The translations under genes were made by a program, and so were the position numbers. From sequence record LR745206.1: a stretch of 64,000 bases of DNA; one strand, written 5' to 3'. Below, piece after piece: positions 1,060 to 64,000 of this stretch. Positions within the stretch are counted from its first letter, which is position 1, and each line of letters opens with the position of its first letter. The notes below the pieces were generated by a model. The model had not been told where the DNA came from and did no database searches. It saw nothing but the letters and a program-made list of their open reading frames with translations.

Positions 1060-1123
1060 TTTTTCTTTTCTTTTTTAAGTGATTAATTTCTACAAATATA
1101 TATAAAGTATTTTAATTAAACTA

Positions 1124-1438
1124 TTATTTTTTCAAAATATTATTAATTAATCTATTTCTTTTTTCTTGTTTTGTTTCTGGTTCACCAATAGCTCTTACAT
1201 TAACATCAACAATATCAGTATCATTTGGTAATTGTTTTGTTGATTTTACCCATTTCCAGTCACCTGGTGTCATTTTAGTTTTTTCTTGTTTATGACATAC
1301 ATTACATTTTCGCCACCTTGGTAGTACCTTCCCTTCTATATTACTTCTATCAGAATGTAATCTAACATTCCAATACCTCCATGTGTGTTTACATGTGAGT
1401 TGTTTAAAGTAGAATTTTATTACTTGTAAAATACCCAT
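1124..1438 (-). CDS. hypothetical protein with CxH/CxxC pairs and C-terminal R-x-x-x-I-x-x-IL tag
   Basis: CKH...CNVC; ends KRNRLINNILKK. Confidence 0.7.
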   Translation of the reverse strand: MGILQVIKFYFKQLTCKHTWRYWNVRLHSDRSNIEGKVLPRWRKCNVCHKQEKTKMTPGDWKWVKSTKQLPNDTDIVDVNVRAIGEPETKQEKRNRLINNILKK

Positions 1439-1719
1439 TAGATATTTATTCTTTTGTATTTATTTGATTCAACCCAACTTATTTTGAATCGAGCTGTTCC
1501 ATAGTATCTATTATTGACGAAGCATTCCAATAGATTGGTTTTTTTATTAAAATTAAATTTAACTTTCTTTTTATCACTAGCACCAACAATTTGTGCTACT
1601 TCTAATACGAATATCTTTTTATGTGGTTGAAATTGTGTTTTGAAATTTCCCATAGTTCCTCTAATAGAAATATAGGTTTGCTCAGATTCATTTTCAATTA
1701 AATTTTTTATAAAATCCAC
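1438..1719 (-). CDS. hypothetical protein
   Basis: ORF track; TATATTTG box at 1740-1747. Confidence 0.7.
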   Translation of the reverse strand: MDFIKNLIENESEQTYISIRGTMGNFKTQFQPHKKIFVLEVAQIVGASDKKKVKFNFNKKTNLLECFVNNRYYGTARFKISWVESNKYKRINI

Positions 1720-1763
1720 ATTTTATGATTTAGTTACTGCAAATATAATAAAAAAAATTCAAT

Positions 1764-2255
1764 TTATAACATATCTTTTAATCCTACTAACATTTCACAA
1801 GAAAGACCAGATCTATCTCTAAGATTTACTTCGGTTGATATGTTTTTACCAAAATAGTTAATATCAACTTTTATATAAGCTCTAACAGAAAATCCAGATG
1901 ATGATTTTGACATCTGAACACTTGTTATCTCAGGAAATTGAATTTTTAAATCATTTGTGTATTTCCTTTCTAAGGATTTTTGCTCAACCCTTGTTATTGA
2001 TTTTGGTACATCTATATGATCTAACTCTCTACACTTATTAATCAATTCTTTTGATAGACCCAATTTAGTACCAACTGAGAAATCTATACTTGATGATCTA
2101 GCACCTGTATCGAACTTTGCTTTTACCTCAACTGTTTTACCTTCTCTAGTTAGAGATATTTTGTGTATACCATAGTAAATTTTATCTTTACTAGTATAAT
2201 CCCACTCAACATCACTTGATGATACCCAATCGTTGAATTTTTCTAAATATATCAT
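1764..2255 (-). CDS. retropepsin-like protease (RimK-associated 'ATP-dependent Zn protease' family)
   Basis: KAKFDTGARSSSID (DTG aspartyl motif) and VNLRDRSGLSCEMLVG; N-terminal MIYLEKFND tag. Confidence 0.8.
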   Translation of the reverse strand: MIYLEKFNDWVSSSDVEWDYTSKDKIYYGIHKISLTREGKTVEVKAKFDTGARSSSIDFSVGTKLGLSKELINKCRELDHIDVPKSITRVEQKSLERKYTNDLKIQFPEITSVQMSKSSSGFSVRAYIKVDINYFGKNISTEVNLRDRSGLSCEMLVGLKDML

Positions 2256-2270
2256 TAAGTATATATTATT

Positions 2271-3137
2271 TTACTTACACCATTTATCCACCATCAAGGT
2301 AACTAACCTAAAGAATTTTTTTCTATATTTTGGTAGCCTTTGGTTTATTTTATTTTCAATCAATTTTTTATTTTTCTCTATATCAGTTAATTCTTCTTCA
2401 TTGTAATTATTGAAAGTTGATCTAAATGCCTTTTTAATATATGATTTGATATATGTGAATATGCTATCATATTCATCTTTATAAAAATCTTTTGTGAAAA
2501 CAAATTGGTGGAATAATCTATTTATTTGGCTCTCAGTAAGATGGTTCTCAAACCTAAATTCTTTATCATAAACATACCAAGTCCAAGAAGTATCTGGTGA
2601 TTGTGATAGGAATTTTTCAAATAGATTATATATGTCACTTGGTGTTGGGTTATCTAAAAGGTTGAAATGTAGATAATCTGATATAAATTTATCAAAACTA
2701 ACATAATATCCGTGATATCTTGATTCAAACTCGTTAGTGTCTAATAAGTAGAATATACTTTGCGCGACAATTAATGGGTCATTCTTTTTAAGAATTTTCA
2801 ATTTACTATTTGAAACATGAAATATATCTTTATAGAAGAATTCTTTAACAATTGAATAATCTAGATGTTTTAATTCATGTAGAAATGTTGAATAATCTCT
2901 TCTATCAGAAAGAAGTATAGTCAACTTCTTTGTTGAAGTGTCTTTTTTGAATTGACCATCCAGTTTCTTCACCTTACCAATCTTTAGTGTGAATGGGAAA
3001 TTACCCTTTTTGTTCTTGTATATAAATATGAACTCATTTTTATCACTTGATGATATCTCATTAAAGTATTTTTTAGCTTGTTCTTCCAAATCAGACTTTA
3101 TTCCAAATTTCTCATTAAATGATTGAATATATTTCAT
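2271..3137 (-). CDS. putative HExxH metallopeptidase-like virion protein
   Basis: Likely start MKYIQSFNE at 3137 (track start extends through promoter); FLHELKH plus downstream NEFESR. Confidence 0.5.
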   Translation of the reverse strand: MKYIQSFNEKFGIKSDLEEQAKKYFNEISSSDKNEFIFIYKNKKGNFPFTLKIGKVKKLDGQFKKDTSTKKLTILLSDRRDYSTFLHELKHLDYSIVKEFFYKDIFHVSNSKLKILKKNDPLIVAQSIFYLLDTNEFESRYHGYYVSFDKFISDYLHFNLLDNPTPSDIYNLFEKFLSQSPDTSWTWYVYDKEFRFENHLTESQINRLFHQFVFTKDFYKDEYDSIFTYIKSYIKKAFRSTFNNYNEEELTDIEKNKKLIENKINQRLPKYRKKFFRLVTLMVDKWCK

Positions 3138-3185
3138 GTAGATATATATTAAATAATTTATTATATTTGTAAAAATAAATTTTAA

Positions 3186-3383
3186 ATGAATAAGTTTAAT
3201 AAAGGACAAAAGATATTCTATTTCTTTATGGATAGTCCTTGTCAATCAACGGTAAGTGATTTTTATATAAAGGACAATGATGTTTTTTATATCGATGCTT
3301 TATTTAATAATATAAAGGAGTGTTATGTTTTCAACACTAAGAAAGAATGTGTTGAATACCACAAGAAAAAGTGGTTAGTCTAA
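3186..3383 (+). CDS. hypothetical protein
   Basis: ORF track; TATATTTG at 3162-3169. Confidence 0.6.
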   Translation: MNKFNKGQKIFYFFMDSPCQSTVSDFYIKDNDVFYIDALFNNIKECYVFNTKKECVEYHKKKWLV

Positions 3384-3692: not shown

Positions 3693-4033
3693 AGTATATT
3701 GTTCAGTTTTTCATCCCGTATAGAAATTGAAATATCAGTGATATCAATTTCCTTAACACTTGTTAATAGATTATATATCTCGTTTCTATCATTTCTTAAT
3801 CTGTTTATAACAGCTTCCTCTCCTAGATGGTTGTACATAGAAACCTCATTCAACGTAAACACATCTTTTTGAAACATTTTACTGTTTATTGTATAATAAT
3901 TTGATAATCGTGTTAATACACTAAGCTTATTGAACTCATCAATCATATAACTAATCTGATTTCTTAGTTTTATCACTTCTTTATATCTATTCTTTCTGAA
4001 TATTTTATCAAGTATTGATTGTTTTAGCTTCAT
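3686..4033 (-). CDS. hypothetical protein, C-terminal tag
   Basis: Likely start MKLKQ at 4033 just after TATATTTG (4038-4045); ends IRDEKLNNILC. Confidence 0.7.
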   Translation of the reverse strand: MKLKQSILDKIFRKNRYKEVIKLRNQISYMIDEFNKLSVLTRLSNYYTINSKMFQKDVFTLNEVSMYNHLGEEAVINRLRNDRNEIYNLLTSVKEIDITDISISIRDEKLNNILC

Positions 4034-4069
4034 CTCACAAATATAATAATTAAAATTAATATATACAAT

Positions 4070-5239: not shown

Positions 5240-5273
5240 ATTTAACTATTATAATTAATATATACAAAAGGTT

Positions 5274-6287: not shown

Positions 6288-6302
6288 ATTAATATATAAC
6301 AT

Positions 6303-9036: not shown

Positions 9037-9064
9037 ATCATATATATTAAAAATATGGTATAAC

Positions 9065-9391: not shown

Positions 9392-9454
9392 ATCTAATAT
9401 ATCTCTGAAATTAAAAAAGTCTAAACTTTTTAATAAAAAACCGTATATTTGTAA

Positions 9455-11307: not shown

Positions 11308-11341
11308 AGCTCTATATATTAAAACTATTTGATTTAAAATG

Positions 11342-12458: not shown

Positions 12459-12568
12459 AATTAATTATTATTTTTTGTTTAACACTTTTTTCGAGTCCGT
12501 GTCGCACAGTTGGAAAGGTTCGAGCCCTCAGGAAATTAACTAACCCAGATTTGCATCTGAGAAACTTA
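12459..12568 (-). promoter_or_regulatory. structured 5' leader of RNA ligase gene (candidate cis-regulatory RNA)
   Basis: TATATTTG at 12575-12582; GC-enriched leader with CUCAGAU-GCAA-AUCUGGG GNRA hairpin and further stems. Confidence 0.45.
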
Positions 12569-12665
12569 TAAGTACAAATATAGTAAAAGTTTTTAATTAA
12601 ACTAAAAAATATTATTTATTTTTCACAAAGATACAAATCTATTAATTTAATATATACATTTGTAT

Positions 12666-14353: not shown

Positions 14354-14443
14354 TTTAGATTATATTAAAATACACTATTCATATTAATAATAGTTTAAAA
14401 AGTTTAATTGTTAATTAATTACTTTATGCTTATATTTGTAATT

Positions 14444-15108: not shown

Positions 15109-15128
15109 TTTTTTTGTATATTTGTAAT

Positions 15129-22268: not shown

Positions 22269-22286
22269 TTCACAAATATACAAAAA

Positions 22287-24980: not shown

Positions 24981-25063
24981 AATGATTTAATTTAGTTTAA
25001 ATACAAATATAATAATTTTTAATGGTTTTTCACATATAATATATAAATTAAATTAAAATAGTA

Positions 25064-26059
25064 ATGAAAAAATCAATTAATGTCTTAAGCATAGATGGTG
25101 GTGGTATAAGAGGTGTTTTACCTGCTGAGATATTAATATATGTTGAGAAGAAATTATCAGAATTATATGGTAAAGAAACCAGACTATCAGATCACTTTGA
25201 TTATATAGCTGGTACATCAACGGGTGGTATTCTAGCGTCATTGTATTGTTTTCCTGATGAAGATGGTAATCCAAAATACTCAGCTATTGATGCTTCAAAT
25301 CTTTATATGGATCATGGTAATTATATTTTTAAGAAAGAATTTCGTTGGTTTTTCACTCTCGGTGGACTTATTGGACCAAGATATAGACCAAATAATTTAG
25401 AGAAATTATTTAAGGTTTATTTCGGTGATGTTAGAATTAAAGAATCAACTACCAATCTTATGTTACCATCAATTGATACTACACAAAGAGATATTTATTT
25501 TTTCAAAAGTTATAAAGGTAAATTAAATGAGAATCATAATATGATGTTTAGAGAAGCTGTTAGATCAACATCAGCAGCTCCTACTTATTTTAGACCGAAT
25601 CATTTAATGGTTGATGGTGATGATAGAAGTTTAATTGATGGTGGTATGGGAGTAAATAATCCAACAGTATCAGCTTATATCGAGGTTAAGAAAATATATC
25701 CTGATGCTAAAATAATAAATGTTTTATCTATTGGTACAGGACCATTGGAATTACCATTTAAATATAAAGTTGCTAAGAGGTGGGGTGTTATTAGTGCTGG
25801 TAAAATATTTGATATAAATTTAAATAGTATGTCAGACGCAGTTGATTATCAAATGAATACATTATATGAAAAAGGTGATTTAGTTGGTGATTATTTGAGA
25901 ATAAATCCGGAATTATTCGGTGCTAAATCAAAGATGGATGGAGCTTCAAAGAAAAATTTAAATATGTTAAAAGAAGCTGGGAAGAAATCATTAGAATTAT
26001 ATAAAAATGACATAGATGAATTCTTAAAAAGGACTACAATTAAGAAGAAGAAAAACTAA
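25064..26059 (+). CDS. patatin-like phospholipase
   Basis: DGGGIRG, GTSTG (GxSxG), DGG; TAATATATA at 25037-25045. Confidence 0.93.
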   Translation: MKKSINVLSIDGGGIRGVLPAEILIYVEKKLSELYGKETRLSDHFDYIAGTSTGGILASLYCFPDEDGNPKYSAIDASNLYMDHGNYIFKKEFRWFFTLGGLIGPRYRPNNLEKLFKVYFGDVRIKESTTNLMLPSIDTTQRDIYFFKSYKGKLNENHNMMFREAVRSTSAAPTYFRPNHLMVDGDDRSLIDGGMGVNNPTVSAYIEVKKIYPDAKIINVLSIGTGPLELPFKYKVAKRWGVISAGKIFDINLNSMSDAVDYQMNTLYEKGDLVGDYLRINPELFGAKSKMDGASKKNLNMLKEAGKKSLELYKNDIDEFLKRTTIKKKKN

Positions 26060-26295
26060 TCTAATATCTTCCTCAATTTCCATTCTCGATAAACATCTAA
26101 TGTAATAAATAATCTATCTGAATGTATTCCAACTGGTGAGTTGGTATCAACATGAATCAATTCCAAAACAATTCTATCATCAGACATTTCAATAGCATCA
26201 TTGACACTATACTTATCACCAATAATAAGGTTATATTTTTGCCCATATAGTTCATCCTTTGAACAAATTAGAATATCTCCCTTATTATATTTCAT
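26056..26295 (-). CDS. hypothetical protein, C-terminal tag
   Basis: ends YREWKLRKILD; TATATTTG at 26300-26307. Confidence 0.7.
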   Translation of the reverse strand: MKYNKGDILICSKDELYGQKYNLIIGDKYSVNDAIEMSDDRIVLELIHVDTNSPVGIHSDRLFITLDVYREWKLRKILD

Positions 26296-26350
26296 TTTAC
26301 AAATATAACAATTTTAAAATAAAAAAACCTCAAATTTTGAGGTCTTTTTT

Positions 26351-26521: not shown

Positions 26522-26586
26522 AATTAATAAATTTATTTTTTATTTATATTTGGTTAAACCAAAAAGTTTTATATTATATAACTTAC

Positions 26587-30298: not shown

Positions 30299-30347
30299 CT
30301 TAGTTATTTTTCAGTTTTTATATATATTAAATAATAATTTTTAATTT

Positions 30348-30626: not shown

Positions 30627-30673
30627 ATAAAACGATATATCTTTTTAATATATACAAAAAGCCAAAGTCTAGG

Positions 30674-31250: not shown

Positions 31251-31265
31251 TTAATATATATCTAT

Positions 31266-31867: not shown

Positions 31868-32114
31868 TTTACATTTGTGTGATCAAATATAATTTCAGTC
31901 TAACTTCTACGAGTTTCAGAACTTCACAATTTCATTCACTCTATCACACATCTTTTAGTTCGGAGTGTTAGTATGATAAACACTTACCTACTGCGGGACC
32001 AACAGATTTATTATCCCATAACCTCGGTAAAGGTTATCCTATTTTTCAGCACGAGTTACCGCAAGTGATTTATATAGGTATATTTTTTATTGATTTCGGT
32101 ATACTTAAACACCT
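31861..32114 (-). ncRNA. candidate structured non-coding RNA
   Basis: ~260-nt gap between convergent genes; own TATATTTG box at 32120-32127; several stems, an 8-bp loop-loop pairing, and a terminal hairpin followed by a U-rich tract. Confidence 0.6.
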
Positions 32115-32132
32115 TACTACAAATATAAGGAA

Positions 32133-33023: not shown

Positions 33024-33060
33024 GTGTTTATTTTTGGATAAACACAAATATACTAAAAAT

Positions 33061-35470: not shown

Positions 35471-35503
35471 TAAAATTATATATTAATTTCGTATATTTGT
35501 ATT

Positions 35504-36043
35504 ATGACTACATTTATTATAATATTGCTAAGTATCTCACAGATTGTGAGTTTCTATTTGATATTTAAGAAAATTAAACCAATAATTAAACCAGATGGTA
35601 TTCTATTAAAACCAATATCTAAGGAGTTTGTTTATAGTGATATAGATCCTAACTTTAATATAGTTTATGATGTTCTTGAATCTATTAAGATAGAGTGTTG
35701 GGCACTTGAGTTTGAAAAAGAACTTTCAGTGGGTGGTAGTCATGATTACTCATTGAAATTCAAATCACATGATGATACTATAAGAGTAAGAGGAAGGATA
35801 TGTGTTTATGAGGATGGTGATCCTTATTTATCATTTTATATAAATTCTGATGGTTGTTCAATAAGTATTGATAGAAATTCACCAATAAAAGATGATATTA
35901 TTTTATTCTTATGGGATTATATACTTGAGTATCATGAAGGTAAAAGATCAGAGAGTAAAAAATATTATGAGGATGGGTTGAAAAAAATATCATCTAAGTT
36001 GAAAACTCTCAATAGAAGTAGAAGATTGAATGAGATATTATGA
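35504..36043 (+). CDS. hypothetical protein with N-terminal TM, C-terminal tag
   Basis: ends NRSRRLNEIL; TATATTTG at 35492-35499. Confidence 0.7.
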   Translation: MTTFIIILLSISQIVSFYLIFKKIKPIIKPDGILLKPISKEFVYSDIDPNFNIVYDVLESIKIECWALEFEKELSVGGSHDYSLKFKSHDDTIRVRGRICVYEDGDPYLSFYINSDGCSISIDRNSPIKDDIILFLWDYILEYHEGKRSESKKYYEDGLKKISSKLKTLNRSRRLNEIL

Positions 36044-36438
36044 TAAATGGTAAAATATATTTAGTTCAAGCGAATTATGATGATTATGAATCATCATGGT
36101 CTAAGATAATAGGTATTTTTGATAGTATTGACGTTGCTGAAAAACATAAACAAAAATGGGATAATTTTTATAATATAAATAAATCTATTTTTGATGAGCC
36201 TAAAAATTGGAAACCAAATTTAACAGATGGTGATGAAGATGATGATGAATGGATGGAATCAAGAGAATATTGGTCATTAAAATCAAAGTATGATGATATA
36301 TTTCAGTTTAATTCGGTTAGTATAGATGAATTATCAACCAATATTGATTTATTTTTGGATAATGAATTTATAACTGATGCAATGAAAGAATTGTTAATTC
36401 AGTATAATAGAGATTATAAAATAAAAGAAATATTATGA
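36040..36438 (+). CDS. hypothetical protein, C-terminal tag
   Basis: ends NRDYKIKEIL. Confidence 0.7.
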   Translation: MINGKIYLVQANYDDYESSWSKIIGIFDSIDVAEKHKQKWDNFYNINKSIFDEPKNWKPNLTDGDEDDDEWMESREYWSLKSKYDDIFQFNSVSIDELSTNIDLFLDNEFITDAMKELLIQYNRDYKIKEIL

Positions 36439-37139: not shown

Positions 37140-37209
37140 TATCATGTAACATCATGATATACTATTATATAATTTTGCAAAGTCTGAAAATATTCATATA
37201 TTTGTAGTT

Positions 37210-38212: not shown

Positions 38213-38695
38213 TTATTCTTTGGTGAAGATTTTTTCCCAAGGAACAATATCATCTGGGTGATATACAATAACATCTACCATAATTTCACTATCTAAATCG
38301 AAAGATATTTTTCTTAATTTAAATTTATATCCGAAATTTTTCATTTTATAGAATGAATCATCCAATTCATTAAAAAAGTCAATTGTTTTTTCCATCTCAA
38401 AATCAGAATCACCAGCCTTTATTATATTTAATAACTGTTCAAATCTAATACGTATTAGATAAGATTGGTATAGTGGATCAGTAATATAATTAATTCTATC
38501 CAATAATTTGAAATTCTTATCAATCAATGTGTGTGAAGAATTCTTCACAGATTTAAACTCACCACCAATATCTACCAACTCCAAGAAGAATTCTCTTATC
38601 TCATCATCTCTATCATAGGATGATTTCATAACAGCATTTGCTACCCAATTTTCGTTTAATTGTTCCAAATCACTATATCTATTTAAATGTTTCAT
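38213..38695 (-). CDS. hypothetical protein, N-terminal tag, paralog family
   Basis: MKHLNRYSDLEQLNEN; IREFFLELVDIGG. Confidence 0.7.
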   Translation of the reverse strand: MKHLNRYSDLEQLNENWVANAVMKSSYDRDDEIREFFLELVDIGGEFKSVKNSSHTLIDKNFKLLDRINYITDPLYQSYLIRIRFEQLLNIIKAGDSDFEMEKTIDFFNELDDSFYKMKNFGYKFKLRKISFDLDSEIMVDVIVYHPDDIVPWEKIFTKE

Positions 38696-39378
38696 AGAAT
38701 TCCTATAAATGTTTTTTCATCATACGTTGTAAATGTTATAAAATTAACACCTACTGATATTTCAACTGATCTATCTATACCTCCGGAGACTCTATCAGAA
38801 TTGTAATCGATTCTATCAATAGTTTTAGATTTTGCCTCAGAATCAAACATTGATTTTAATTCTGTTCTTATATCAGGTGAAATTTCCGTAGTATCTAACT
38901 GAACTGATGATGTTTCAGCATATTCTTCATATTTATTATCAGTTTTTTTAATATCAATAGATTTGGACTTTAAATATCTCTCAACATCTGTTATATTTAT
39001 GAAAATTTCTCTCCATTTTTGACCTCCTATAAATTCATATTTGGAATCACCAACTTCATTTGGTATAGCAACAACAATTAATGATGTATTACTAATAGCC
39101 ATTTTTATTTCATAGTTCTCAATTCTTTCTTTAGCTGATATTATATCTTCAAAATCTTCTATAATAGATTTTAATCTAGTTATTATATTAGATGGGTCTT
39201 GTAAATTATCCAGTATAACACCAAGTCCCCAGGTAAATTTCCATTTTTTATATAAACCGGACCACTTATTACTTTCGACCTTAGGTTCACCCAATACATC
39301 ACAGATATAGGCAAAATTATCCATTATATCTTGGTATTCTGTATCTACGGACTCTAAAAAATTTTTTAAATGCTTCAC
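38692..39378 (-). CDS. hypothetical protein, N-terminal tag, paralog family
   Basis: GTG start MKHLKNFLES; IMDNFAYICDVLG. Confidence 0.7.
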   Translation of the reverse strand: MKHLKNFLESVDTEYQDIMDNFAYICDVLGEPKVESNKWSGLYKKWKFTWGLGVILDNLQDPSNIITRLKSIIEDFEDIISAKERIENYEIKMAISNTSLIVVAIPNEVGDSKYEFIGGQKWREIFINITDVERYLKSKSIDIKKTDNKYEEYAETSSVQLDTTEISPDIRTELKSMFDSEAKSKTIDRIDYNSDRVSGGIDRSVEISVGVNFITFTTYDEKTFIGIL

Positions 39379-39388
39379 AATCTATATA

Positions 39389-40765
39389 TTACTTTTTCTT
39401 AAAGAAATCCCAAAATCCTCTTACCTTCTTTTCTTCTGGTTTCTTTTCTTCTGGTTTTGGTTGATTCTTTTTATTTATCTTCTTCAAAAGATTTATAACA
39501 CCATTTGAATACTTATCACTAACAGATTTGTCAGTATTGTAAATTCTATAATCTTCTTTACTCACATAAAAATATAATGGATTATCCATATCATATTTTC
39601 TATCATTTATAGTATATACTGGTAGTTGATATGTTGGTATTTGTGTGTTTACTACCAAATACCAGTTATCATTTCTATCGAATACCAACCATTTATCTAC
39701 TTTACCAATAAACTGTTTACTTTTAACTATCTCTTCCTCTGTTATTTTACCCTTTTTTAATTTTATACCAACATATAAAATATCATCACTCTTTAAAGCA
39801 TATTCATCTAATATATTTTGTGAAAATCCTGTTAAGTTAACAAAGGTTAGATCATAATTTTTTCTCGTAGCATACATAGCCTTTGGTAAAGAATCACCCA
39901 GTAAAAGCATACCAACATTAGATGAGTAAGTCTTTGAGAAGAAAAGATATATCTCACTCTCATCATCCAAATGCCCATCTGGTAAATTTAAATTATTACA
40001 AACTCTTTCTTTATCAACAACCTTTACCCATGATTTACTAGTACCGATACTTTCACATCCAGGAAATCTCTCATAGAAAGATTTCTTTATACCTTTTATT
40101 AGGTTCAAAATTGTAAAAAGTACACCAAGGAATGTATGATTGTCACTATGTCTTACTTTATCATTATTATCAGAAAAGGCTACATATGATAGATCTTCCG
40201 TATTTAGACTTATACCAAATCTAACCCAACCTTTAGAACTTCTATAATGGTCTAAATAATTATTATCAGGTGTTATTATATTTTTAACATATCTATTATC
40301 AATAACCACCCATTGTTCTGGGTATTTTGAATGATAATTATCCCAATGGCTTTTTGTTTTCAAACACCATGATGGAGAAGCTATCTTTAATATACCTTTA
40401 TGTGTGAAAACTTTGTAATAAGAATATTGTGAATCTTTGTAATATAGTTCTAAATCTTCATCTTTGTCTTTGTCTTCTGCTAGTTCAGTATAGAACATAT
40501 CCAATATTTGATCATAAGATAGTTTGTTTAGTTTATTAACATCAATTTTAGAATTTTTCAAAACATCAAATATAGATTGTATTTCCTCCATATCTTCTAT
40601 CTTATCAACAAACCTAATCTTTGTTAAAATACCGACATATCCATTATTCCCACCACAAATTTCTCTTATTTTAAGATAGTCTTGGTATTCTGGTGAATCT
40701 TGATTTATACCATTTTTATTTAATACAGATTTAGCGTATGCTATGTTTTCATTAATTGATTTCAT
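39389..40765 (-). CDS. hypothetical protein, N-terminal tag
   Basis: Likely start MKSINEN at 40765 after TAATATATA; SWCL...WDNY motif; ends VRGFWDFFKKK. Confidence 0.7.
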   Translation of the reverse strand: MKSINENIAYAKSVLNKNGINQDSPEYQDYLKIREICGGNNGYVGILTKIRFVDKIEDMEEIQSIFDVLKNSKIDVNKLNKLSYDQILDMFYTELAEDKDKDEDLELYYKDSQYSYYKVFTHKGILKIASPSWCLKTKSHWDNYHSKYPEQWVVIDNRYVKNIITPDNNYLDHYRSSKGWVRFGISLNTEDLSYVAFSDNNDKVRHSDNHTFLGVLFTILNLIKGIKKSFYERFPGCESIGTSKSWVKVVDKERVCNNLNLPDGHLDDESEIYLFFSKTYSSNVGMLLLGDSLPKAMYATRKNYDLTFVNLTGFSQNILDEYALKSDDILYVGIKLKKGKITEEEIVKSKQFIGKVDKWLVFDRNDNWYLVVNTQIPTYQLPVYTINDRKYDMDNPLYFYVSKEDYRIYNTDKSVSDKYSNGVINLLKKINKKNQPKPEEKKPEEKKVRGFWDFFKKK

Positions 40766-40831
40766 TATGTATATATTAATAAACAATCGCTAATTATTGT
40801 GTTGGATATTAATATATAAAAATAAAAAGAA

Positions 40832-45625: not shown

Positions 45626-45657
45626 ATTTATTTTTAGTTTGTTTCTTATATATTAAA

Positions 45658-47477: not shown

Positions 47478-47553
47478 AATGATATATATTAAAAAAGGGG
47501 ATCTATTTTATATTATATATAAAATCGTTAAGAAATCAAAATAAAATTAATCA

Positions 47554-47943: not shown

Positions 47944-47974
47944 TAATTAATATATACTAAAAAAGTATATCATT

Positions 47975-49792
47975 ATGGCTATATTAGGCGGATCACCACT
48001 AGGTCTTATCGGAGTTAGAAGTACACCAAGTAGGGATGGTATGTCAACTTTTAATGGTGGTAAATCACGTAATGTTAATATAAATAGATATAATTCTGGT
48101 AAACCTAATGAAGGTGATGCTAAAGGTGGTATGGTATCACTTTTCACTGGTGGTAGTCGGGTTAAGGCTTGGCCTAACATAGGAAGTATTGGTACTGATA
48201 AAGATTCAACAGGATTAAAAGATGATTATAAAGGAACTACCAGATCAACCTTACATAATAATGATATTTATGATACTAGTGTTTTGAATGTTATTGAAAA
48301 GTTAGCAGGTACATCTGCTGCTTTAAGACCTTCTGATTTCGCTTACTTAAAGGACTTGGGAGTTTTCCCAAATAATAGATTGTTGATTGCTAGAAGATTC
48401 TCCGGTCCTAGACCTGATAATATTTTTAGAAAAAGTACATTACCATTAGCTGTTATGATGTCTTGGAAACCAGAAGGTGAAGATTTTTTTACTATAAGTT
48501 TTGGTGAGCATTGGGAAGATTCAAAAGCAGATTTTACTAGTATATTAACTAGTATGGGTGAAGACTTTATGGGTAAAAATGTTGGTGGTGCTGTTGGTGG
48601 TGCTCTTGGTACCATACCTCTACCTGGATTCACCGAACAGCTACAAAGAAGTGTTTTAACAAAACTAGGTGTCCTTAAAGAAGGATCTGATGCTGATATA
48701 CTACCAGCTGGAAATCCAAATTTAATAAAAATAGCTAAGAAGAGAAAAACTATACCTTATGGTGAAGCTGGTAGTGGATTAAAATGTGATTTTAGTGTTT
48801 CTATGATTTGTGTATATGAGCAAAAATTTATATCAGGTATTGATCCGACAATAGTTTGGCAAGATTTATTAAGTACTATTTTGAAATTTGGTACTTCTGT
48901 TAGTTCTGATTATGGTCTTAGTGATTCATTTGGAGCGAAGATAAATTCTTGGGCTAGAAACCCAAGACAAATGGTTAAGGATTTTGCAGTGGCTCTAAAA
49001 GAAGGGTTGAGTAGTGCTAAAAAAGCATTATTGGACCTATTAGACGCTGATTATCAGAAAAAAATAGATGAAGCTGCTAGTGATTCTGGTGAGGAAGACG
49101 AAAGAACACAATCCCAGAAATTAGAGGATGAGAGAAATGTTGAAAGGGGTAATTTAGAATCTCTTATAGATGGTATAGTTGGTGCTAGTATTGAGACTAT
49201 ATCCGCCACTGTTCGTAAGTATGAACAAGAAATAAGAGGGGTTGTCGGTGCATTAACAGGTGCTCCTACCACACCATGGCACATAACAATTGGAAACCCA
49301 TTGAGGCCTATATTTTGTGCTGGTGATATGTTGGTTGAGGATGTTAAGTTAACAACTGGTCCTGATTTAGCATTTAATGATCTACCAATGAGAGTGACAG
49401 TTGAATTTACGATGAAAAATGCTAGACCTTGGGGTTTACAAGAAATAGCTTCTAAATTTAATACTGGTAATATAAGAGTTGTTAATACTATAAGAGATTT
49501 TGCATCATTAACACCAGAACAAACACTATTTGGTGATCCACTTGAATATGTTGGTGAGACACCAACTGAGATTCAGAGTAATGGTAATTCTGGTGTTAGT
49601 AATAACGTTGCTGGTAATAATAACTTTAATAGTGGTGTGACATCAGAAAATGCTCAAACCGAAGTTATAAATCCGGATGCTGGTTCTGGATCAACCCCAG
49701 ATCCTACAATAAAAGAAGGTACTAATACAATAACACCAGCTCAACAACAAGCAATAAATCAAAATAATGCTCTAAATAATAATACACCATAA
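47975..49792 (+). CDS. baseplate/tail-tube initiator-like structural protein (gp48/gp54-like)
   Basis: PWHITIGNPLRPIFCAGDMLVEDVKL...DLPMRVTVEFTMK tube-like fold; precedes gp53-like gene; TAATATATA at 47948-47956. Confidence 0.55.
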   Translation: MAILGGSPLGLIGVRSTPSRDGMSTFNGGKSRNVNINRYNSGKPNEGDAKGGMVSLFTGGSRVKAWPNIGSIGTDKDSTGLKDDYKGTTRSTLHNNDIYDTSVLNVIEKLAGTSAALRPSDFAYLKDLGVFPNNRLLIARRFSGPRPDNIFRKSTLPLAVMMSWKPEGEDFFTISFGEHWEDSKADFTSILTSMGEDFMGKNVGGAVGGALGTIPLPGFTEQLQRSVLTKLGVLKEGSDADILPAGNPNLIKIAKKRKTIPYGEAGSGLKCDFSVSMICVYEQKFISGIDPTIVWQDLLSTILKFGTSVSSDYGLSDSFGAKINSWARNPRQMVKDFAVALKEGLSSAKKALLDLLDADYQKKIDEAASDSGEEDERTQSQKLEDERNVERGNLESLIDGIVGASIETISATVRKYEQEIRGVVGALTGAPTTPWHITIGNPLRPIFCAGDMLVEDVKLTTGPDLAFNDLPMRVTVEFTMKNARPWGLQEIASKFNTGNIRVVNTIRDFASLTPEQTLFGDPLEYVGETPTEIQSNGNSGVSNNVAGNNNFNSGVTSENAQTEVINPDAGSGSTPDPTIKEGTNTITPAQQQAINQNNALNNNTP

Positions 49793-50298
49793 TGGATATA
49801 AAGTCATTGAATGAATATTTAAAATTTGATAATAATAATGGTCTTTTTGACCTATTTACTTCCACATTTGTTTATAAAAGGAATATACAATTATCTGAGT
49901 ATATAGTGGAAAGGGATAATGAGATGAGACTTGATTTAATATTTCAAAGAATATATAATTTAGAAAGTAATGAAGTGGGTTTATATTTAGGTGAGCTTGA
50001 TGTTTTATTATTTATAAATGGTATAAGCAATCCACTAAATATAAGAGAGGGTATGGTTATAAAATATCCTACTGAAATGGGTGATATACAAGAATTTAGA
50101 GTTGTTAATACGGATGATGATATTAATAACAAAGGTAAGATTAAAGAGAGACTTTCATTCCCTAATAAATCAACAAGAAAAGATAAATCAAGAGAGACCT
50201 TTGTAAAAGATGGATTTTCTTTACCACCGGTTGTTTTAGAAACACCGAGATCTCCAGTTAGTATAAAGAATGGTAAATTCTCTATTGGTGGACTTTGA
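49792..50298 (+). CDS. baseplate wedge protein, gp53/LysM-like
   Basis: YIVERDNEMRLDLIFQRIY...LLFINGISNPLNIREGMVIKYP. Confidence 0.7.
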   Translation: MDIKSLNEYLKFDNNNGLFDLFTSTFVYKRNIQLSEYIVERDNEMRLDLIFQRIYNLESNEVGLYLGELDVLLFINGISNPLNIREGMVIKYPTEMGDIQEFRVVNTDDDINNKGKIKERLSFPNKSTRKDKSRETFVKDGFSLPPVVLETPRSPVSIKNGKFSIGGL

Positions 50299-50317
50299 TA
50301 ATTTTTATAAATAGTCT

Positions 50318-51931
50318 ATGGAAGAAATTAAATCCGTAAGAGTTAGGACTAGTGAATCTAATGATATAAAGGTAACAATATATAAATCCGGTAACAAGAG
50401 AAAGGTTAGTGGGTATAGTTCTGTTAATACGTTAGGTGATAGTGAATATGGTGGTAGTAGATATAGAGATTTGAGTGATGATGAAATCATACAAGACTTT
50501 TTATCTGTTGTATCTAAGAGAGAGAATAAATCATTAGATTTTTATAAAATAGTCCAAAATCCTTGGATGGAAAACCCACCAATGTGGAGAAGTTATGGTA
50601 CTGATCCTTACTATCTAAATAATGGAACAAAGGTTTTTATAAATTGGTTAAATGATGATGATATCAATGCTGGTGGTAAAGAATGGAGTGATGAAAGTGG
50701 TAATGAATTGGATATTAAAAGAGGATTGACATCAAGTACTAAAGGTTTGATTACAAAAACAGTTACTATAAGACCTCCTTCTGGTTCCGGTGATAATGCT
50801 TTAATTGTTAAAGATTCTAATATTAGTGATCTATTCGAAACTGGTCAAAAATTCATAGGTAATACCGTAGATTTAAGTATAATAACACAAGTTATATCAT
50901 ATTGGAAGAATAAAGTTCCTAATTATGAACTTAGTCTATGTAGTCCAAATAATGAATTTTGTAATACCATACCTTATAAAAGTCCTGTTAAGGAAAATTC
51001 ACCAGATGATCCAGAACCTATACCAACGGAAGAATCCACACAAAATGAAAAAAAGATTAAGTTGAATGTTGTTTTACCAACAGAATTATCACTTAGGGTT
51101 AAGGATGACTTGAATGGTTTGAAGGTTTATGTTGGTGATATACCACCTCTTGTTGTTGATGGGTTTGTATTTCAGGATGATTTTAAAAACTTAGACGAAT
51201 TAGATCCAGAGTTCACTGAAAGTGGGTTTGTTGGTGAAGAAGAAACAAATGCGGTTGCTGATGAACCAGATCCACAACAGTTAGAAGAAGAACAGGAAGT
51301 AGGTACACCAACAAGTCCTGTTAGTGGGGCTCCTTTGTCCAATTCTAAATTATTGATATCATCAAAGAGTGGTAGATATTATGTCTTATCAACTAATAAT
51401 GGTGTTGCTGGTCATCGACTTAAAAATGTAATAACCGATTTAGAAAATTATCTAAATAGTAATGGGTTTTCTGGTACTAAATTGGCTAGTAATGGTATAA
51501 TGAGAGATTTAGAATCATCTGCTGTTCCTAGTAACCCAGCCAGAGCCAAGGGTTCATTACATGGAGCTGGATTAGCGATAGATTTAAAATTTACAATACC
51601 AGGTAAGAGTTGGAGTGGTATAGGTGATAATGGTAATTTGTCTAAAGATAGTAAGTTAAATAAAGCTATTTATAATTGGGTAAAATCACAAGGTGATATA
51701 ACTTGGGGTGGTCAATGGGGTAAATCAAAACCAGAAAGTGGTATGGTGCAAGGTTGGGGTATAACTGAATATCACCATTTTGAAATAAAATCATCAAAAA
51801 TAGTCGAATATTGGAAACCATTTAGTGATGAATTATCATCAATTGGATTTGATTATAAAAAGTTAAACACAACAACAAATTTACAAAGTTTATATTTGAA
51901 ATTGTTAGGAAAGGGTGGAGGTTTAGCTTAA
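50318..51931 (+). CDS. baseplate-region protein with C-terminal M15-family Zn peptidase
   Basis: SLHGAGLAIDL (H, D) ...WGGQW...EYHHFE (H); acidic FVFQDDF..LDELDPEF linker. Confidence 0.75.
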   Translation: MEEIKSVRVRTSESNDIKVTIYKSGNKRKVSGYSSVNTLGDSEYGGSRYRDLSDDEIIQDFLSVVSKRENKSLDFYKIVQNPWMENPPMWRSYGTDPYYLNNGTKVFINWLNDDDINAGGKEWSDESGNELDIKRGLTSSTKGLITKTVTIRPPSGSGDNALIVKDSNISDLFETGQKFIGNTVDLSIITQVISYWKNKVPNYELSLCSPNNEFCNTIPYKSPVKENSPDDPEPIPTEESTQNEKKIKLNVVLPTELSLRVKDDLNGLKVYVGDIPPLVVDGFVFQDDFKNLDELDPEFTESGFVGEEETNAVADEPDPQQLEEEQEVGTPTSPVSGAPLSNSKLLISSKSGRYYVLSTNNGVAGHRLKNVITDLENYLNSNGFSGTKLASNGIMRDLESSAVPSNPARAKGSLHGAGLAIDLKFTIPGKSWSGIGDNGNLSKDSKLNKAIYNWVKSQGDITWGGQWGKSKPESGMVQGWGITEYHHFEIKSSKIVEYWKPFSDELSSIGFDYKKLNTTTNLQSLYLKLLGKGGGLA

Positions 51932-52193: not shown

Positions 52194-52230
52194 TTTCTTT
52201 AGTAATTTTTATTTATATATTAATTTCAAA

Positions 52231-53757
52231 TTATATAAAATTATCAAAATCGCTTTTTCTAGCAAGTGTATAAGTGAATGTATCTTTTTCTGTGTTATTT
52301 ATTTGACTATCACATAACATTATAAATTGTTTATATTGTGTGACACTTTTAAATACTTGAGAACCCTCAGAGTAGTTATAAACATTTTCAGAAGTTCCTA
52401 TTTCACTAGATCTTATTATGCTTATAGCAAAATTACCTGTTTCGATTGGTGATTTATAATTGTATCTTTCTACACCTTGATTCCTATGAACTGATGAATT
52501 ATTAAATTTCAAACATTTATAGTTTTTATCATCTTTATGGTATCCTATTTTACACTGATCAACATATTGACCAAGTGATAATATTGCTACATTTTCTGGT
52601 AATAACTCAGTTTTTGGTATAAATCCAGGTGTTGTTGTTATTGAATATTCTGTTAAATCCCAGTTACCATTTTTATTTCTAAAAAATACATATAAAACAT
52701 CATCAAATTTATTAGTAACAACACCATTATCCTTTGTCCTAAGTGATACGATATTTAATGTATAAATATCATTATATATTTTATACCCTTTTGATTCCAT
52801 AAATCTCACCAACTTCTCTATTGTTGGATTAGACTCAACTGTTTTTAAATCTTCTTTAACTGGGATGTTATTTTCCTTTTCTGGATTAGGAACATTATCA
52901 GGTTCTCCATTGGTAGCTGGTGCGACATAAGTATCATCATAGTCAGATTTTGGACCATCCTGTGGTTTGAAATCTTCATCAGTTTTTGTTGTCATGTCAT
53001 TATCACCCTTTGTTGAGTTCCAAGCATCTCCAACTTGTGGATCATCCTCTCTATCAGTCATTTTAACAGTGGTTACTTGGTTATTATCAACTATATTAAC
53101 ATGATGTGAAAGAAATACAGGGTCTCTTAATGCTTTATATTTTAATAATACTGATATGAATGCTGGATTAGGAACAACTGGTGCTGATAAATTACCTAAA
53201 AATGGACCTGCTTGATTACCTAATAGATTATCAACGAATTCATCAAACCAGTCCATCCAATGATTACCTAATATTGCTTGTTGAGCCGCAGTCGCGTCTC
53301 CTATATTAACATTCCTATTATTATCTTTAAGATTTAGATCGATTGTGTTTTCTGTTATATTGATGTTGTTGTACTTATGGTCTATTTTAAGACCTTCTTC
53401 CTCATTAACATATATTTGTGTTTTGTGATCAAATATTAATGATTTCATTGATTTGTAATTATCACCATCTAATGTTTCTAACTTCTTTTCTAAGTTTATA
53501 TTATAATGATCTGAGAATATAAACTCTGGTTTATAGGTATCTCCTTGATCAAATACAACAATTAAAACTTTACCTTTTTCTGGAACATTGAATGTGTTTC
53601 CATTTAAATCTTTCCAAGGAGTTGCCCATGGTAGATCTTCTACTGGTATTTCATCAAAAATATCCAATACTCTAACCTTAACTCTTCCGAGTTTTTTAGG
53701 ATCTGTGTTATCCTCAACAACACCTATATAAGTTTTATTAGGTTCTACTTTATTCAT
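52231..53757 (-). CDS. gp5-like baseplate hub/spike protein (OB-fold) with degenerate YkuD-like C-terminal domain
   Basis: YIGVVEDNTDPKKLGRVKVRV...DLPWATP, VPEKGKVLIVVFDQGD; C-terminal LNIVSLR, NKFDD, TTTPG, GQY, FTYTL. Confidence 0.8.
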   Translation of the reverse strand: MNKVEPNKTYIGVVEDNTDPKKLGRVKVRVLDIFDEIPVEDLPWATPWKDLNGNTFNVPEKGKVLIVVFDQGDTYKPEFIFSDHYNINLEKKLETLDGDNYKSMKSLIFDHKTQIYVNEEEGLKIDHKYNNINITENTIDLNLKDNNRNVNIGDATAAQQAILGNHWMDWFDEFVDNLLGNQAGPFLGNLSAPVVPNPAFISVLLKYKALRDPVFLSHHVNIVDNNQVTTVKMTDREDDPQVGDAWNSTKGDNDMTTKTDEDFKPQDGPKSDYDDTYVAPATNGEPDNVPNPEKENNIPVKEDLKTVESNPTIEKLVRFMESKGYKIYNDIYTLNIVSLRTKDNGVVTNKFDDVLYVFFRNKNGNWDLTEYSITTTPGFIPKTELLPENVAILSLGQYVDQCKIGYHKDDKNYKCLKFNNSSVHRNQGVERYNYKSPIETGNFAISIIRSSEIGTSENVYNYSEGSQVFKSVTQYKQFIMLCDSQINNTEKDTFTYTLARKSDFDNFI

Positions 53758-55680: not shown

Positions 55681-55705
55681 AAACTATATATTAAATTCTT
55701 TAGCT

Positions 55706-58796: not shown

Positions 58797-58829
58797 AATC
58801 TATATATTTGACATCAGTCCTTCTGTAAA

Positions 58830-60888: not shown

Positions 60889-60891
60889 AAT

Positions 60892-61550: not shown

Positions 61551-61555
61551 ATTTT

Positions 61556-62221: not shown

Positions 62222-62318
62222 TTATCAAAGTTATTTTTTAGTTTTATGTATTTATTATATGAATGTTTATTAAAAGTGGGTTTATGTTTTTAATATATAA
62301 TAAAAAAATAAGTATTAT

Positions 62319-62606
62319 ATGAAAACTAAAGTTGAAATTAATGGATACGAAATCGAGATCGAAGAAAAAGATGGTCTTATTATCGTAAAAGCTGAGAAAG
62401 ACGAAGAAATTGTTGAAGAATTCACAATTGAAATGGAAGAAGGTGAAGAAGGACAAGATGAGGTTCAAGGATTTGAAGACTTCGAAGGTGGTGAAGAAGA
62501 AGGTGACTTTGACGGAGACGACTCAGAAGGTGAAGAATTTGGAGACGAAGACGAATCTAAATTAGAGTCTTTCCAATCTTTTGTTAACAAGAACATAAAA
62601 AAATAA
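62319..62606 (+). CDS. highly acidic small protein
   Basis: E/D-rich tract; ends KLESFQSFVNK; TAATATATA at 62291-62299. Confidence 0.75.
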   Translation: MKTKVEINGYEIEIEEKDGLIIVKAEKDEEIVEEFTIEMEEGEEGQDEVQGFEDFEGGEEEGDFDGDDSEGEEFGDEDESKLESFQSFVNKNIKK

Positions 62607-62616
62607 ATCTTAATTA

Positions 62617-63672
62617 ATGATTAAGAAATTTAATCAATTTCTAGAAAATAACAATTCTAGATACCTGCTATACTATGCTTTCGACTGGGATGATAATATA
62701 TTAAACATGCCGACTGTAATACATATGGATAAGAGGGTTGGTGAATCTTGGGTACCTACTGATGTATCAACTGCTGAATTTGCAGAAGTTCGTGGGTCTG
62801 ATGATTATAGGATATTAAATAACAACCCTGATGAAGCATTCTCTGAATTTAGAGATTTTGGTCCAAGAGGTATGGAAGCGTTTTTGATAGATGTGAAATC
62901 AGCTATTAAACAAAAAAGATTTGGTCCTGCTTGGGATGATTTCATTGAATGTTTGAGTAATGGTTGTGTATTTGCTATAATAACAGCTAGAGGTCATGAG
63001 CCAGAAGCTATTAGATTAGGTATAGAGTGGATAATAGACAATGTTATGACTGAGGAAGAGGTTTATGAAATGTATAATAACCTATTAAAATTTGAATATG
63101 TATTTGATAGAGAAGAGGGTGATAAAATACTTAGAGGTAAACCCTCTGAGAATGTATCATTCCGTAAATACTTAGATCAATGTGATTTGGTTGGGGTTTC
63201 ATCACCATCAAGAGGTGGTGCTCCGGATAATCCAGAAAAGTCCAAAGAAGAAGCTTTGTTGGAATTTAAAGAAAAGGTTAATAATTATGCGTCTAGAATC
63301 GGTGTTAAAGCTAAAGTTGGATTTTCTGATGATGATTTGAAAAATGTTAAACACATCGAAGACCTAATTGATAATTTAAATCATGAACAATTCCCAAATA
63401 TAATTGAATATGTTGTTAAGGGAACAAAAGATCCATCATCTATAACTAAAAAGGTTAGAACTATGAGTGAAGGATCACAAACTACTGGGTTAGAATCGTC
63501 TGTTTTACCGTTTACACAATTTAATAATATGACAAATAAATTGTACCCAAAGGGTCCGGATAATAGGCAAGATGATTTTGCTAATGAGTTTAGAAGACAA
63601 TCTGAGTATTTAGCAAAAACTTCAAAAGAAACTTTAGATAAAAAAAATATTAAAAATAAAAAATCCTCTTAA
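62617..63672 (+). CDS. HAD-superfamily-like protein, N-terminal tag
   Basis: AFDWDDNIL, IITARGH, GFSDDD; MIKKFNQFLEN. Confidence 0.65.
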   Translation: MIKKFNQFLENNNSRYLLYYAFDWDDNILNMPTVIHMDKRVGESWVPTDVSTAEFAEVRGSDDYRILNNNPDEAFSEFRDFGPRGMEAFLIDVKSAIKQKRFGPAWDDFIECLSNGCVFAIITARGHEPEAIRLGIEWIIDNVMTEEEVYEMYNNLLKFEYVFDREEGDKILRGKPSENVSFRKYLDQCDLVGVSSPSRGGAPDNPEKSKEEALLEFKEKVNNYASRIGVKAKVGFSDDDLKNVKHIEDLIDNLNHEQFPNIIEYVVKGTKDPSSITKKVRTMSEGSQTTGLESSVLPFTQFNNMTNKLYPKGPDNRQDDFANEFRRQSEYLAKTSKETLDKKNIKNKKSS

Positions 63673-63684
63673 AGAGGATTTTTT
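63658..63684. terminator. bidirectional intrinsic terminator
   Basis: AAAAAATCCTCT-TAA-AGAGGATTTTTT. Confidence 0.85.
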
Positions 63685-63917
63685 TTATCTATAATTTTAT
63701 TTAATTTCTCATCTCTCACTATTTGCTTCTCATTTAGATGATACCATCCTCTAAAATCATGTATATAATAAACATAATTAATTACTTTACCATTCTCATC
63801 AACATCAGCGGTACAAGTTGAACCAAACATAAATTTTTTAAAACTTTCAAACCATTCAGTAGGTATTTCATAGTCCCTAACATCAGTTCCTCTGTCATAT
63901 AACTCTTTTGCTGTCAT
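63669..63917 (-). CDS. hypothetical protein, C-terminal tag
   Basis: ends VRDEKLNKIIDKK; TATATTTG at 63923-63930. Confidence 0.7.
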   Translation of the reverse strand: MTAKELYDRGTDVRDYEIPTEWFESFKKFMFGSTCTADVDENGKVINYVYYIHDFRGWYHLNEKQIVRDEKLNKIIDKKNPL

Positions 63918-64000
63918 AAGTACAAATATAGTAAACTTAGATGTTATTTCCTAATATATCATGTGATGGATAAGTCTTATATAAAAAATATGATGCAGAA

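Follow-up and report, generated by a model that had tools for sequence, protein, structure and literature searches.

Late genes of bacteriophage T4 are transcribed from a single short A/T-rich box, TATAAATA, which lies at -13 to -6 and has a weak -13 position (PMC1524935). Housekeeping (sigma-A) promoters of Bacteroidota have a -33 TTTG and a -7 element TAnnTTTG; in Flavobacterium johnsoniae the -7 element runs from T-12 to G-5 and is followed by 4-5 nt to the transcription start (PMC6847099), and in F. psychrophilum the box lies at -12 to -5 (PMC9723704). Genomes of more than 634 kb in the Mahaphage clade are predicted to replicate in Bacteroidetes (PMC7162821). Here we describe two boxes, TATATTTG and TAATATATA, that precede genes in a 64,000-nt window (bases 62001-126000) of LR745206.1, the 634,780-bp genome of an uncultured "Mahaphage"; a window coordinate is the genome coordinate minus 62000, and coordinates below are those of the window unless marked as genome coordinates. 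To our knowledge, Mahaphages are the largest phages known, and we know of no cultured host, public annotation or described regulatory signals for them. We consider it likely that transcription of this phage relies on the host RNA polymerase and at least two types of promoter, a host-type box, TATATTTG(T), referred to as class A, and a phage-type box of the gp55-like late type, (T)TAATATATA, referred to as class B. Our literature search found TAATATATA nowhere linked to a phage promoter, and the Mahaphage paper contains no promoter analysis (PMC7162821).

Enrichment, geometry and conservation of the boxes

Both boxes are enriched well beyond what the composition of the DNA predicts. The window holds 27 copies of TATATTTG, compared to 12.9 ± 3.7 in dinucleotide shuffles, and 24 copies of TAATATATA, compared to 8.4 ± 3.0, and no shuffle equals either count. 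Nearly all of the TAATATATA boxes (21/24) are located 4-22 nt before a same-strand ATG gene start; boxes 31535 and 36895 are orphans, and box 39383 is 4 nt before a GTG. For TATATTTG, 15/27 boxes are located 3-34 nt before a start, boxes 12575 and 32120 head a 116-nt leader and a non-coding stretch, respectively, and the remaining ten are intragenic or antisense, approximately the number expected from chance. Every position listed for these motifs in an initial annotation of the window (16/16 for TATATTTG and 15/15 for TAATATATA) does hold the motif. That annotation placed TATATTTG a short distance upstream of gene starts; this is true for most of its sites, one of which (1740) precedes a GTG start, and fails for 12575 and 32120 because of the long leader and non-coding stretch that follow them. 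Nine TAATATATA boxes were absent from its list (30321, 30646, 31252, 31535, 36895, 39383, 40770, 45647 and 52214).

The positional and strand bias of the motifs, for which the annotation had proposed an enrichment test, is overwhelming across the genome and stronger there than in the window. Genes were called on the whole of LR745206.1 by a codon-usage score, giving 931 genes at a coverage of 92%. An unbiased count of k-mers in the 40 nt upstream of called starts returns TAATATATA as the top 9-mer genome-wide (141/191 copies, a 31-fold enrichment), and the next distinct motif is TATATTTGT (56/114 copies); for TATATTTG there are 216 copies in the genome, 67 of them ≤30 nt upstream of gene starts. 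TAATATATA is found at 16-26% of genes, mainly at the first gene following a gap or terminator. Gaps between co-directional genes provide the cleanest strand test, since both orientations share one composition; the ratio of sense to antisense copies in these gaps is 76:6 for TAATATATA and 54:5 for TATATTTG genome-wide, and convergent gaps contain 0 and 2 copies, respectively. Terminator hairpins are also enriched (14 vs. 5.1 expected), several of them directly before a box, and E. coli-type -35/-10 promoters are not enriched (122 found vs. 130 expected).

A feature of both boxes, missed by the initial annotation, is that they mostly abut the start codon, implying leaderless mRNAs: genome-wide, the distance to ATG peaks sharply at 4-5 nt for each. 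Class B has two modes of spacing, 4-6 nt in 73/147 sites and 17-29 nt in about 65, with almost none at 7-16 nt, and class A spacing is 3-6 nt in 30/67 sites, with its peak at 4-5 nt. An A at +5 after the class B box is present in 87% of leadered sites vs. 37% of orphan copies, and we infer that this A is the initiating nucleotide. The logo of 191 class B sites conserves only TTAATATATA and the A at +5, with no conserved element within 45 nt upstream. For class A, a TTG with a 19-20 nt spacer is present at 28/68 sites (41%) vs. 4/149 class B sites, so that the -33/-7 architecture of sigma-A is matched; TATATTTG itself matches the -7 consensus TAnnTTTG (TAHHTTTG) exactly. These features and the fitting distance to the start bear out the earlier identification of TATATTTG as the Bacteroidota housekeeping -7 element, and the ATG peak 4-5 nt after the box is, judged from sequence, consistent with the sigma-A start point. 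Given the published spacing from the -7 element to the start, TATATTTG followed by 4 nt and ATG would place the A of the start codon at +1 and yield a leaderless mRNA. Leaders of 2-12 nt are avoided, a pattern that would be expected if the 5' end is fixed by the box and unexpected for a ribosome-binding signal.

Judged by these distances, roughly half of the promoter-proximal genes would be leaderless (73/147 for class B and 30/67 for class A). Leaderless or nearly leaderless mRNAs make up 3.7% of mRNAs in B. thetaiotaomicron (PMC7366714) and 5.5% in F. psychrophilum (PMC9723704); the share in the phage is unusual for Bacteroidota. In leadered genes, both class B and box-less, an A-rich block, AAAAAATAA, is found 8-20 nt before ATG, for example at 62300-62318; it is the third enriched k-mer in this genome and in its relatives, and is probably a translation-initiation region replacing the Shine-Dalgarno sequence.

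The two classes are frequently arranged back to back. There are 23 divergent class A/class B pairs genome-wide, with a modal gap of 10-12 nt, and 8 tandem pairs in the same direction. In the tight divergent modules, the -33 TTG of class A falls within the 4 nt that separate the class B box from the ATG on the opposite strand.

The class B box is conserved in related phages. The sole near relative within the phage collection is LR756502.1 (642 kb), in which, over 200 kb, TAATATATA is again the top 9-mer (67/83 copies) with the same bimodal spacing. Among 124 reciprocal-best orthologues of the two genomes (median amino-acid identity 56%), class B genes keep the exact box at 17/22 orthologues although the flanks have diverged, with an odds ratio of 20. 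The box and its bimodal spacing are also present in LR756504 and LR756501, which have gp55-like proteins of 59% and 48% identity. Lak-A1, in which TAG is read as sense, has AATAAATA instead, with 17/31 copies 21-32 nt before starts and no leaderless class. By sequence, the Lak box is essentially the T4 box, since AATAAATA differs from TATAAATA only at the poorly conserved -13 position, and the lake-clade box is one base different: with the last A aligned at -6, AATATATA and TATAAATA differ at one conserved position. The cultured Tenacibaculum phage pT24, which has a gp55-like gene, shows enrichment of TATATTTG in 100 kb; a possible motif there, GTTATATTA, is supported by 4/7 copies, too few to judge.

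Genes, terminal peptide motifs and sigma factors

The two classes head different sets of genes. Class B units include the portal, major head, head decoration, tail sheath, tail fibre and baseplate hub genes; the exact box is present at the units of the portal, head decoration, fibre and baseplate hub, and a one-mismatch box at the major head and sheath genes, which also belong to class B units. Class A units include genes for an EF-G-like factor, nicotinamide phosphoribosyltransferase (NAMPT), an NAD-dependent ligase, a CCA-adding enzyme and peptidases. Each of the four large tRNA clusters, which together hold 51/59 tRNAs, has an exact class B box 18-204 nt upstream, and in 3/4 the class B box is itself preceded, at 42-43 nt, by a class A box; in one cluster the class B box is 18 nt before tRNA-Met with no intervening ORF. 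The presence of boxes ahead of untranslated tRNA genes argues for a transcriptional role.

The arrangement before three of the tRNA clusters (genome 342364, 387685 and 406687) is a repeated module of a host-type box, 42-43 nt, and a phage-type box. The phage-type box of this module has a common GGGA-rich, T-run prefix, and a short ORF begins 6-7 nt after it; the module possibly encodes a leader peptide or serves as a conserved control element.

A number of genes carry neither exact box, among them the DNA polymerase pieces, helicase, SbcC-like nuclease, ribonucleotide reductase, clamp loader and the gp55-like gene described below. The division into two promoter classes proposed for the window is thus incomplete: the lack of either box at replication genes indicates that there are probably more than two promoter classes, and the scheme should be widened to at least three. 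Candidates for a third class did not hold up, with no motif approaching class A or B. K-mer enrichment in box-less upstream regions was indecisive; inspection of TAAACT, TATAAT and TATAAATA contexts was unhelpful; and strand tests were weak or null (49:18 for TAAACT[AT] and 21:17 for an extended -10-like TG-n-TATAAT). A TG-n-TATAA(T/A) box recurs 20-25 nt before ATG at a few replication genes, in too few cases for statistics. Matches to family-B DNA polymerase are split over two distant genes (genome 232803-234344 and 130568-131992).

Promoter class is closely coupled to two terminal peptide motifs. The C-terminal motif (C-tag), R-[DENSQ]-x-x-[IL]-x-x-[ILVF]-[LIG] in the last 22 residues, is present in 143 proteins vs. 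2/781 mid-protein control windows; it typically ends 0-2 residues before the C-terminus, has the core form R-[DE]-x-K-[IL]-x-x-[IL]-L, and is carried by about 15% of proteins, mostly small ones (in the window, for example, the products of 26056-26295 (-), 35504-36438 (+) and 63669-63917 (-)). A strict N-terminal motif (N-tag) of the M-K-Y-L-K-x-F-E type is found in 71 proteins, or about 8%, and only one protein has both tags. Paralogy does not link the tagged proteins, which form 141 C-tag and 69 N-tag sequence clusters. Of the genes directly behind an exact TAATATATA, 37/149 are N-tagged and 0 are C-tagged, and of those directly behind TATATTTG, 1/68 is N-tagged and 19 are C-tagged. When counted by transcription unit, class A has 69 C-tagged and 1 N-tagged genes and class B has 13 and 62 (p 1e-26), an association that is unchanged after collapsing paralogue clusters. 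The observation in the initial annotation that the two motifs track the two tags is therefore confirmed; the association is very strong and is not due to paralogy. One addition to its pairing of early genes with the C-tag is that the majority of C-tagged genes lack a box themselves and take their class from the operon.

The C-tag is kept in 10/13 orthologues and its codon usage equals that of the genome, which together point to a peptide-level feature. These two observations and the occurrence of the tag on single-gene units ending at convergent genes rule out a nucleotide signal. The N-tag likewise acts at the peptide level and is retained in orthologues. A Pfam scan of ten tagged or neighbouring proteins returned one NUDIX domain and otherwise no match.

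The initial annotation had suggested looking for a gp55-like sigma elsewhere in the genome, and such a gene is present. A search of the genome with Pfam Sigma70_r2 returned two genes. One encodes a 201-aa ECF-like sigma with regions 2 and 4 (genome 330037-330642) and lies within a class A unit. The other encodes a 121-aa protein (genome 189151-189516) that matches PHROG 234, 'late sigma transcription factor', with E 2e-7. A PDB search with the single sequence gave nothing meaningful; a clade profile built from four members has T4 gp55 (PDB 7d7c_F, E 8e-5) as its best solved match, and hhalign against T4 gp55 gives a probability of 92.8%. Homologues are encoded by every Mahaphage genome, by Lak phages, and by jumbo phages in which the gene is annotated as late sigma. 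The clade copies measure 121-134 aa, which indicates that the protein is natively short. The gene is equipped with a terminator of its own, and the conserved region upstream of it belongs to neither class A nor class B. Searches of the genome gave no hits to RNA polymerase beta, beta-prime or T7-type genes.

The clade copies also share a conserved C-terminal end, S-N-D-G-x-G-[IMF]-[HY]-[SN]-[LIF], which may be partner-binding, and in LR745206.1 a 53-aa C-tagged ORF overlaps the 3' end of the gp55-like gene (region genome 189151-189649). Relatives of this sigma are encoded on 272 viral contigs in IMG/VR, with 88-100% identity to it for the best 80 of the 272, so this phage group is widespread in metagenomes.

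Probable readers of the boxes

In the scheme that we favor, class A, TATATTTG(T), would be a sigma-A -7 element (TAnnTTTG) in a strong form, in most cases with TTG 19-20 nt upstream, and could be read by the unmodified host holoenzyme upon DNA entry; it heads units rich in small C-tagged proteins together with metabolic and translation genes. Class B, (T)TAATATATA, would be a single box with no -35-like partner, most likely read, as in T4, by the host core polymerase with a phage sigma of the gp55 family; it heads the virion genes, most N-tagged proteins and the tRNA clusters. Transcription would start about 5 nt after the box in both classes, giving a leaderless mRNA where ATG is 4-5 nt after the box and otherwise a 13-25 nt A-rich leader, and the back-to-back pairs would act as compact bidirectional modules.

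Seven independent lines of evidence support this scheme: the geometry, the upstream element, the gene content, the tRNA clusters, the gp55 homologue, the conservation at orthologues, and the Lak box variant. The earlier interpretation of two promoter types is thereby supported, and so is the late-type character of TAATATATA, a single box with no upstream partner that heads structural genes and is kept at orthologues in relatives. The terms 'early' and 'late' are assigned here from box type and gene content, and we likewise infer the transcription start sites, the timing, and which sigma reads which box.

The resemblance to T4 late transcription is extensive: a single short A/T-rich box with no -35 partner stands before virion genes, a gp55-family sigma is encoded, and other genes are served by host-type promoters. 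With a Bacteroidota host, these early promoters would be TAnnTTTG rather than the -35/-10 promoters of T4. Class A, in turn, resembles Bacteroidota sigma-A promoters in the fit of TATATTTG to the -7 element, the TTG 19-20 nt upstream, and the published 4-5 nt from box to start. It differs from them in that the phage uses one nearly invariant version, TATATTTGT, and in that about 45% of the phage sites are leaderless by geometry, compared to 3.7-5.5% leaderless mRNAs in the bacteria (PMC7366714, PMC9723704). The arrangement of many small early genes, each with its own host-type promoter just after a terminator hairpin, is also shared with known phages. T4-type phages have early cassettes of a promoter and a stem-loop; unlike in those, the early proteins here also share a C-terminal peptide motif.

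Several observations weigh against the scheme, some of them differences from T4. The box sequence differs from that of T4 and about half of the sites abut ATG; if the start is at +5, the class B box would occupy -13 to -5 vs. -13 to -6 in T4 (PMC1524935), i.e. one base nearer the start. The gp55-like protein has 121 aa vs. 185 aa in T4 and is without the C-terminal part of the T4 protein, and although a clamp loader is present, Pfam gp45 domains matched no gp45-type clamp (gp33 was not looked for). In 100 kb of pT24 there is no TAATATATA enrichment despite its gp55-like gene. Class B precedes many non-structural genes, including the NUDIX hydrolase and tRNAs, and accounts for 37-53% of genes by unit, so 'late' may mean 'middle plus late'. 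The ECF-like sigma could read class B or a third class. Pfam models could miss divergent RNA polymerases. Finally, with respect to start sites and timing, a search of sequencing runs found the phage in no RNA run and weakly in a single DNA run.

Some of these points would fit a different reader, with TAATATATA being a real phage promoter recognized by an ECF-like sigma, a phage-remodelled sigma-A, or an undetected phage polymerase. We regard this as unlikely, though it is the alternative that fares best. In its favor, a class A (early) unit contains the gene for another sigma, one that has regions 2 and 4; the gp55-like protein itself is short, and the Pfam search returned no clamp partner for it (gp33 was not looked for). 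ECF sigmas normally require a -35 element, however, and none is conserved in the 191 TAATATATA sites; moreover, the boxes of this family (TAATATATA here and AATAAATA in Lak) look like the T4 late consensus, box and gp55-like gene are found together across the clade, and no polymerase genes were detected.

It is more doubtful still that TAATATATA serves translation initiation, as an A/T-rich binding site for the ribosome or S1 that replaces Shine-Dalgarno, and is not a promoter. Bacteroidota do not use Shine-Dalgarno sequences, and the center of the box is about 9 nt before ATG in half of the sites, a ribosome-binding-site position; huge phages of the Mahaphage kind are also without Shine-Dalgarno motifs (PMC7162821). 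A signal of this sort is difficult to reconcile with spacing that is bimodal (4-6 or 17-29 nt) and not single, with the conserved A at +5 in leadered sites, or with the equal 4-5 nt peak of a bona fide promoter element, TATATTTG. Nor does it account for TAATATATA ahead of tRNA clusters, once at 18 nt with no ORF between, for its restriction to 16-26% of genes, chiefly the first after a gap or terminator, or for a related box in Lak-A1 that is found solely 21-32 nt upstream.

That the motifs are by-products of A/T-rich intergenic composition and recent gene-cassette duplication, with no regulatory meaning, is extremely improbable: both are A/T-rich in a genome of 29% G+C and about ten of the 27 window TATATTTG copies are chance occurrences inside genes, but no shuffle reaches the observed counts, the strand bias (76:6 and 54:5) arises within the same A/T-rich gaps, the spacing peaks are sharp, the tagged genes form 69 and 141 separate sequence clusters, and the box is kept at orthologues with diverged flanks.

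Returning to two promoter types read by the host polymerase, a nine-base late box and a host-type early box would permit about 930 mostly unknown genes to be split into temporal classes from sequence only, and would aid the correct placement of start codons and the reading of lake metatranscriptomes. The scheme would also extend the gp55 late-transcription logic of T4 to phages of Bacteroidota, with a drift of the box between AATAAATA in Lak and TAATATATA in the lake clade. What is unexpected is that leaderless mRNAs seem to be used on a large scale and that the boxes are coupled almost perfectly to two terminal tags; both point to the biology of protein sorting, packaging or turnover. We tentatively suggest, as a possibility that may well prove wrong, that the two promoter classes are the transcriptional half of a proteome-wide addressing code in which the tags are sorting or fate signals and the programme runs largely via leaderless mRNAs. 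Under such a code, the N-tag could act like the T4 capsid-targeting sequence, which it may resemble, and load dozens of proteins into the huge head, and the C-tag could flag early proteins to be localised or to be removed at a set time.

The boxes along the window

The divergent pairs reported at 3143/3162, 4038/4057 and 35477/35492 are real, and form three tight back-to-back modules with gaps of 10, 11 and 6 nt, respectively. In the first (3143..3169), the phage-type box 3143-3151 (-) is 5 nt from ATG 3137, which opens a gene for an N-tagged product of 288 aa, and the host-type box 3162-3169 (+) is 16 nt from ATG 3186. In the second (4038..4065), the host-type box 4038-4045 (-) and the phage-type box 4057-4065 (+) are both 4 nt from ATG, at 4033 (C-tagged) and 4070 (N-tagged), and both genes look leaderless. 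In the third (35477..35499), the phage-type box 35477-35485 (-) is 6 nt from ATG 35470, and the host-type box 35492-35499 (+) is 4 nt from ATG 35504, which heads a run of C-tagged genes. A wider divergent pair (25004..25045) consists of the host-type box 25004-25011 (-) and the phage-type box 25037-25045 (+), with leaders of 23 and 18 nt; its (-) unit includes the nicotinamide phosphoribosyltransferase gene. Another wider pair joins the phage-type box 12648..12656 (+), 9 nt before ATG 12666, to the host-type box 12575, from which it diverges. Two phage-type boxes also diverge from each other, 40770-40778 (-) being 4 nt before ATG 40765 and 40810-40818 (+) 13 nt before ATG 40832.

Phage-type boxes with leaderless geometry are found at 2260..2268 (-), 4 nt before ATG 2255, with an N-tagged product that begins MIYLEKFND; at 6290..6298 (+), 4 nt before ATG 6303 and overlapping the stop region of the preceding gene; at 9041..9049 (-), 4 nt before ATG 9036 of the N-tagged NUDIX hydrolase; at 31252..31260 (+), 5 nt before ATG 31266, with the box kept at the LR756502 orthologue; and at 47483..47491 (-), 5 nt before ATG 47477, with the box likewise conserved at the orthologue. 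The box 11313..11321 (-) follows a terminator-like hairpin (11369-11341) and is itself followed by 5 nt and ATG 11307. The baseplate-hub operon is headed by the box 55685..55693 (-), 4 nt before ATG 55680; the next gene in this unit encodes the gp5-like baseplate hub (52231-53757). The box 39383-39391 (-) overlaps the stop codon of the gene 39389-40765 and is 4 nt before the GTG of ORF 38692-39378; this GTG may act as a leaderless start, unless the gene in fact begins at ATG 39324.

At an intermediate distance, the phage-type box 5256..5264 (+) is 9 nt before ATG 5274 of a gene for a 337-aa N-tagged product. Leadered phage-type boxes are located at 30321..30329 (-), 22 nt before ATG 30298 (466 aa); 30646..30654 (+), 19 nt before ATG 30674, with an N-tagged product; 45647..45655 (-), 21 nt before ATG 45625 (663 aa); and 52214..52222 (-), 20 nt before ATG 52193, with equal spacing in the relative. 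The operon 47975-51931 is headed by the box 47948..47956 (+), 18 nt before ATG 47975 (605 aa), compared to 19 nt at the LR756502 orthologue, and the box 62291..62299 (+) is 19 nt before ATG 62319, with the box kept at 20 nt in the relative.

Leadered host-type -7 boxes include 1093..1100 (-), 33 nt before ATG 1059; 1740..1747 (-), 20 nt before the GTG 1719 that opens ORF 1438-1719; 26545..26552 (+), absent from the earlier list and 34 nt before ATG 26587 of a gene for a C-tagged protein of 235 aa; and 33045..33052 (-), 21 nt before ATG 33023, with a C-tagged product. Two others precede long G+C-richer stretches. The box 12575..12582 (-) is separated by 116 nt (12459-12574) from ATG 12458 of a gene for 362 aa, and this leader may be a structured regulatory 5' UTR. 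The box 32120..32127 (-) is followed by about 230 nt (31880-32115, -) that hold no ORF, tRNA or Rfam match and are a candidate phage non-coding RNA.

The remaining host-type -7 boxes lie close to their start codons. Leaderless geometry is seen at 9444..9451 (+), 3 nt before ATG 9455; at 14431..14438 (+), 5 nt before ATG 14444 and with TTG at the -33 position; at 15117..15124 (+), 4 nt before ATG 15129; and at 37197..37204 (+), 5 nt before ATG 37210 (259 aa). The box 22273..22280 (-) stands between a hairpin (22310-22287) and ATG 22268, 4 nt away. The box 26300..26307 (-), 4 nt before ATG 26295, heads a single-gene unit of leaderless geometry whose gene (26056-26295, -) encodes a 79-aa C-tagged product and is convergent with its neighbour, and the box 63923..63930 (-), also of leaderless geometry, is 5 nt before ATG 63917 of a gene for a C-tagged protein of 82 aa.

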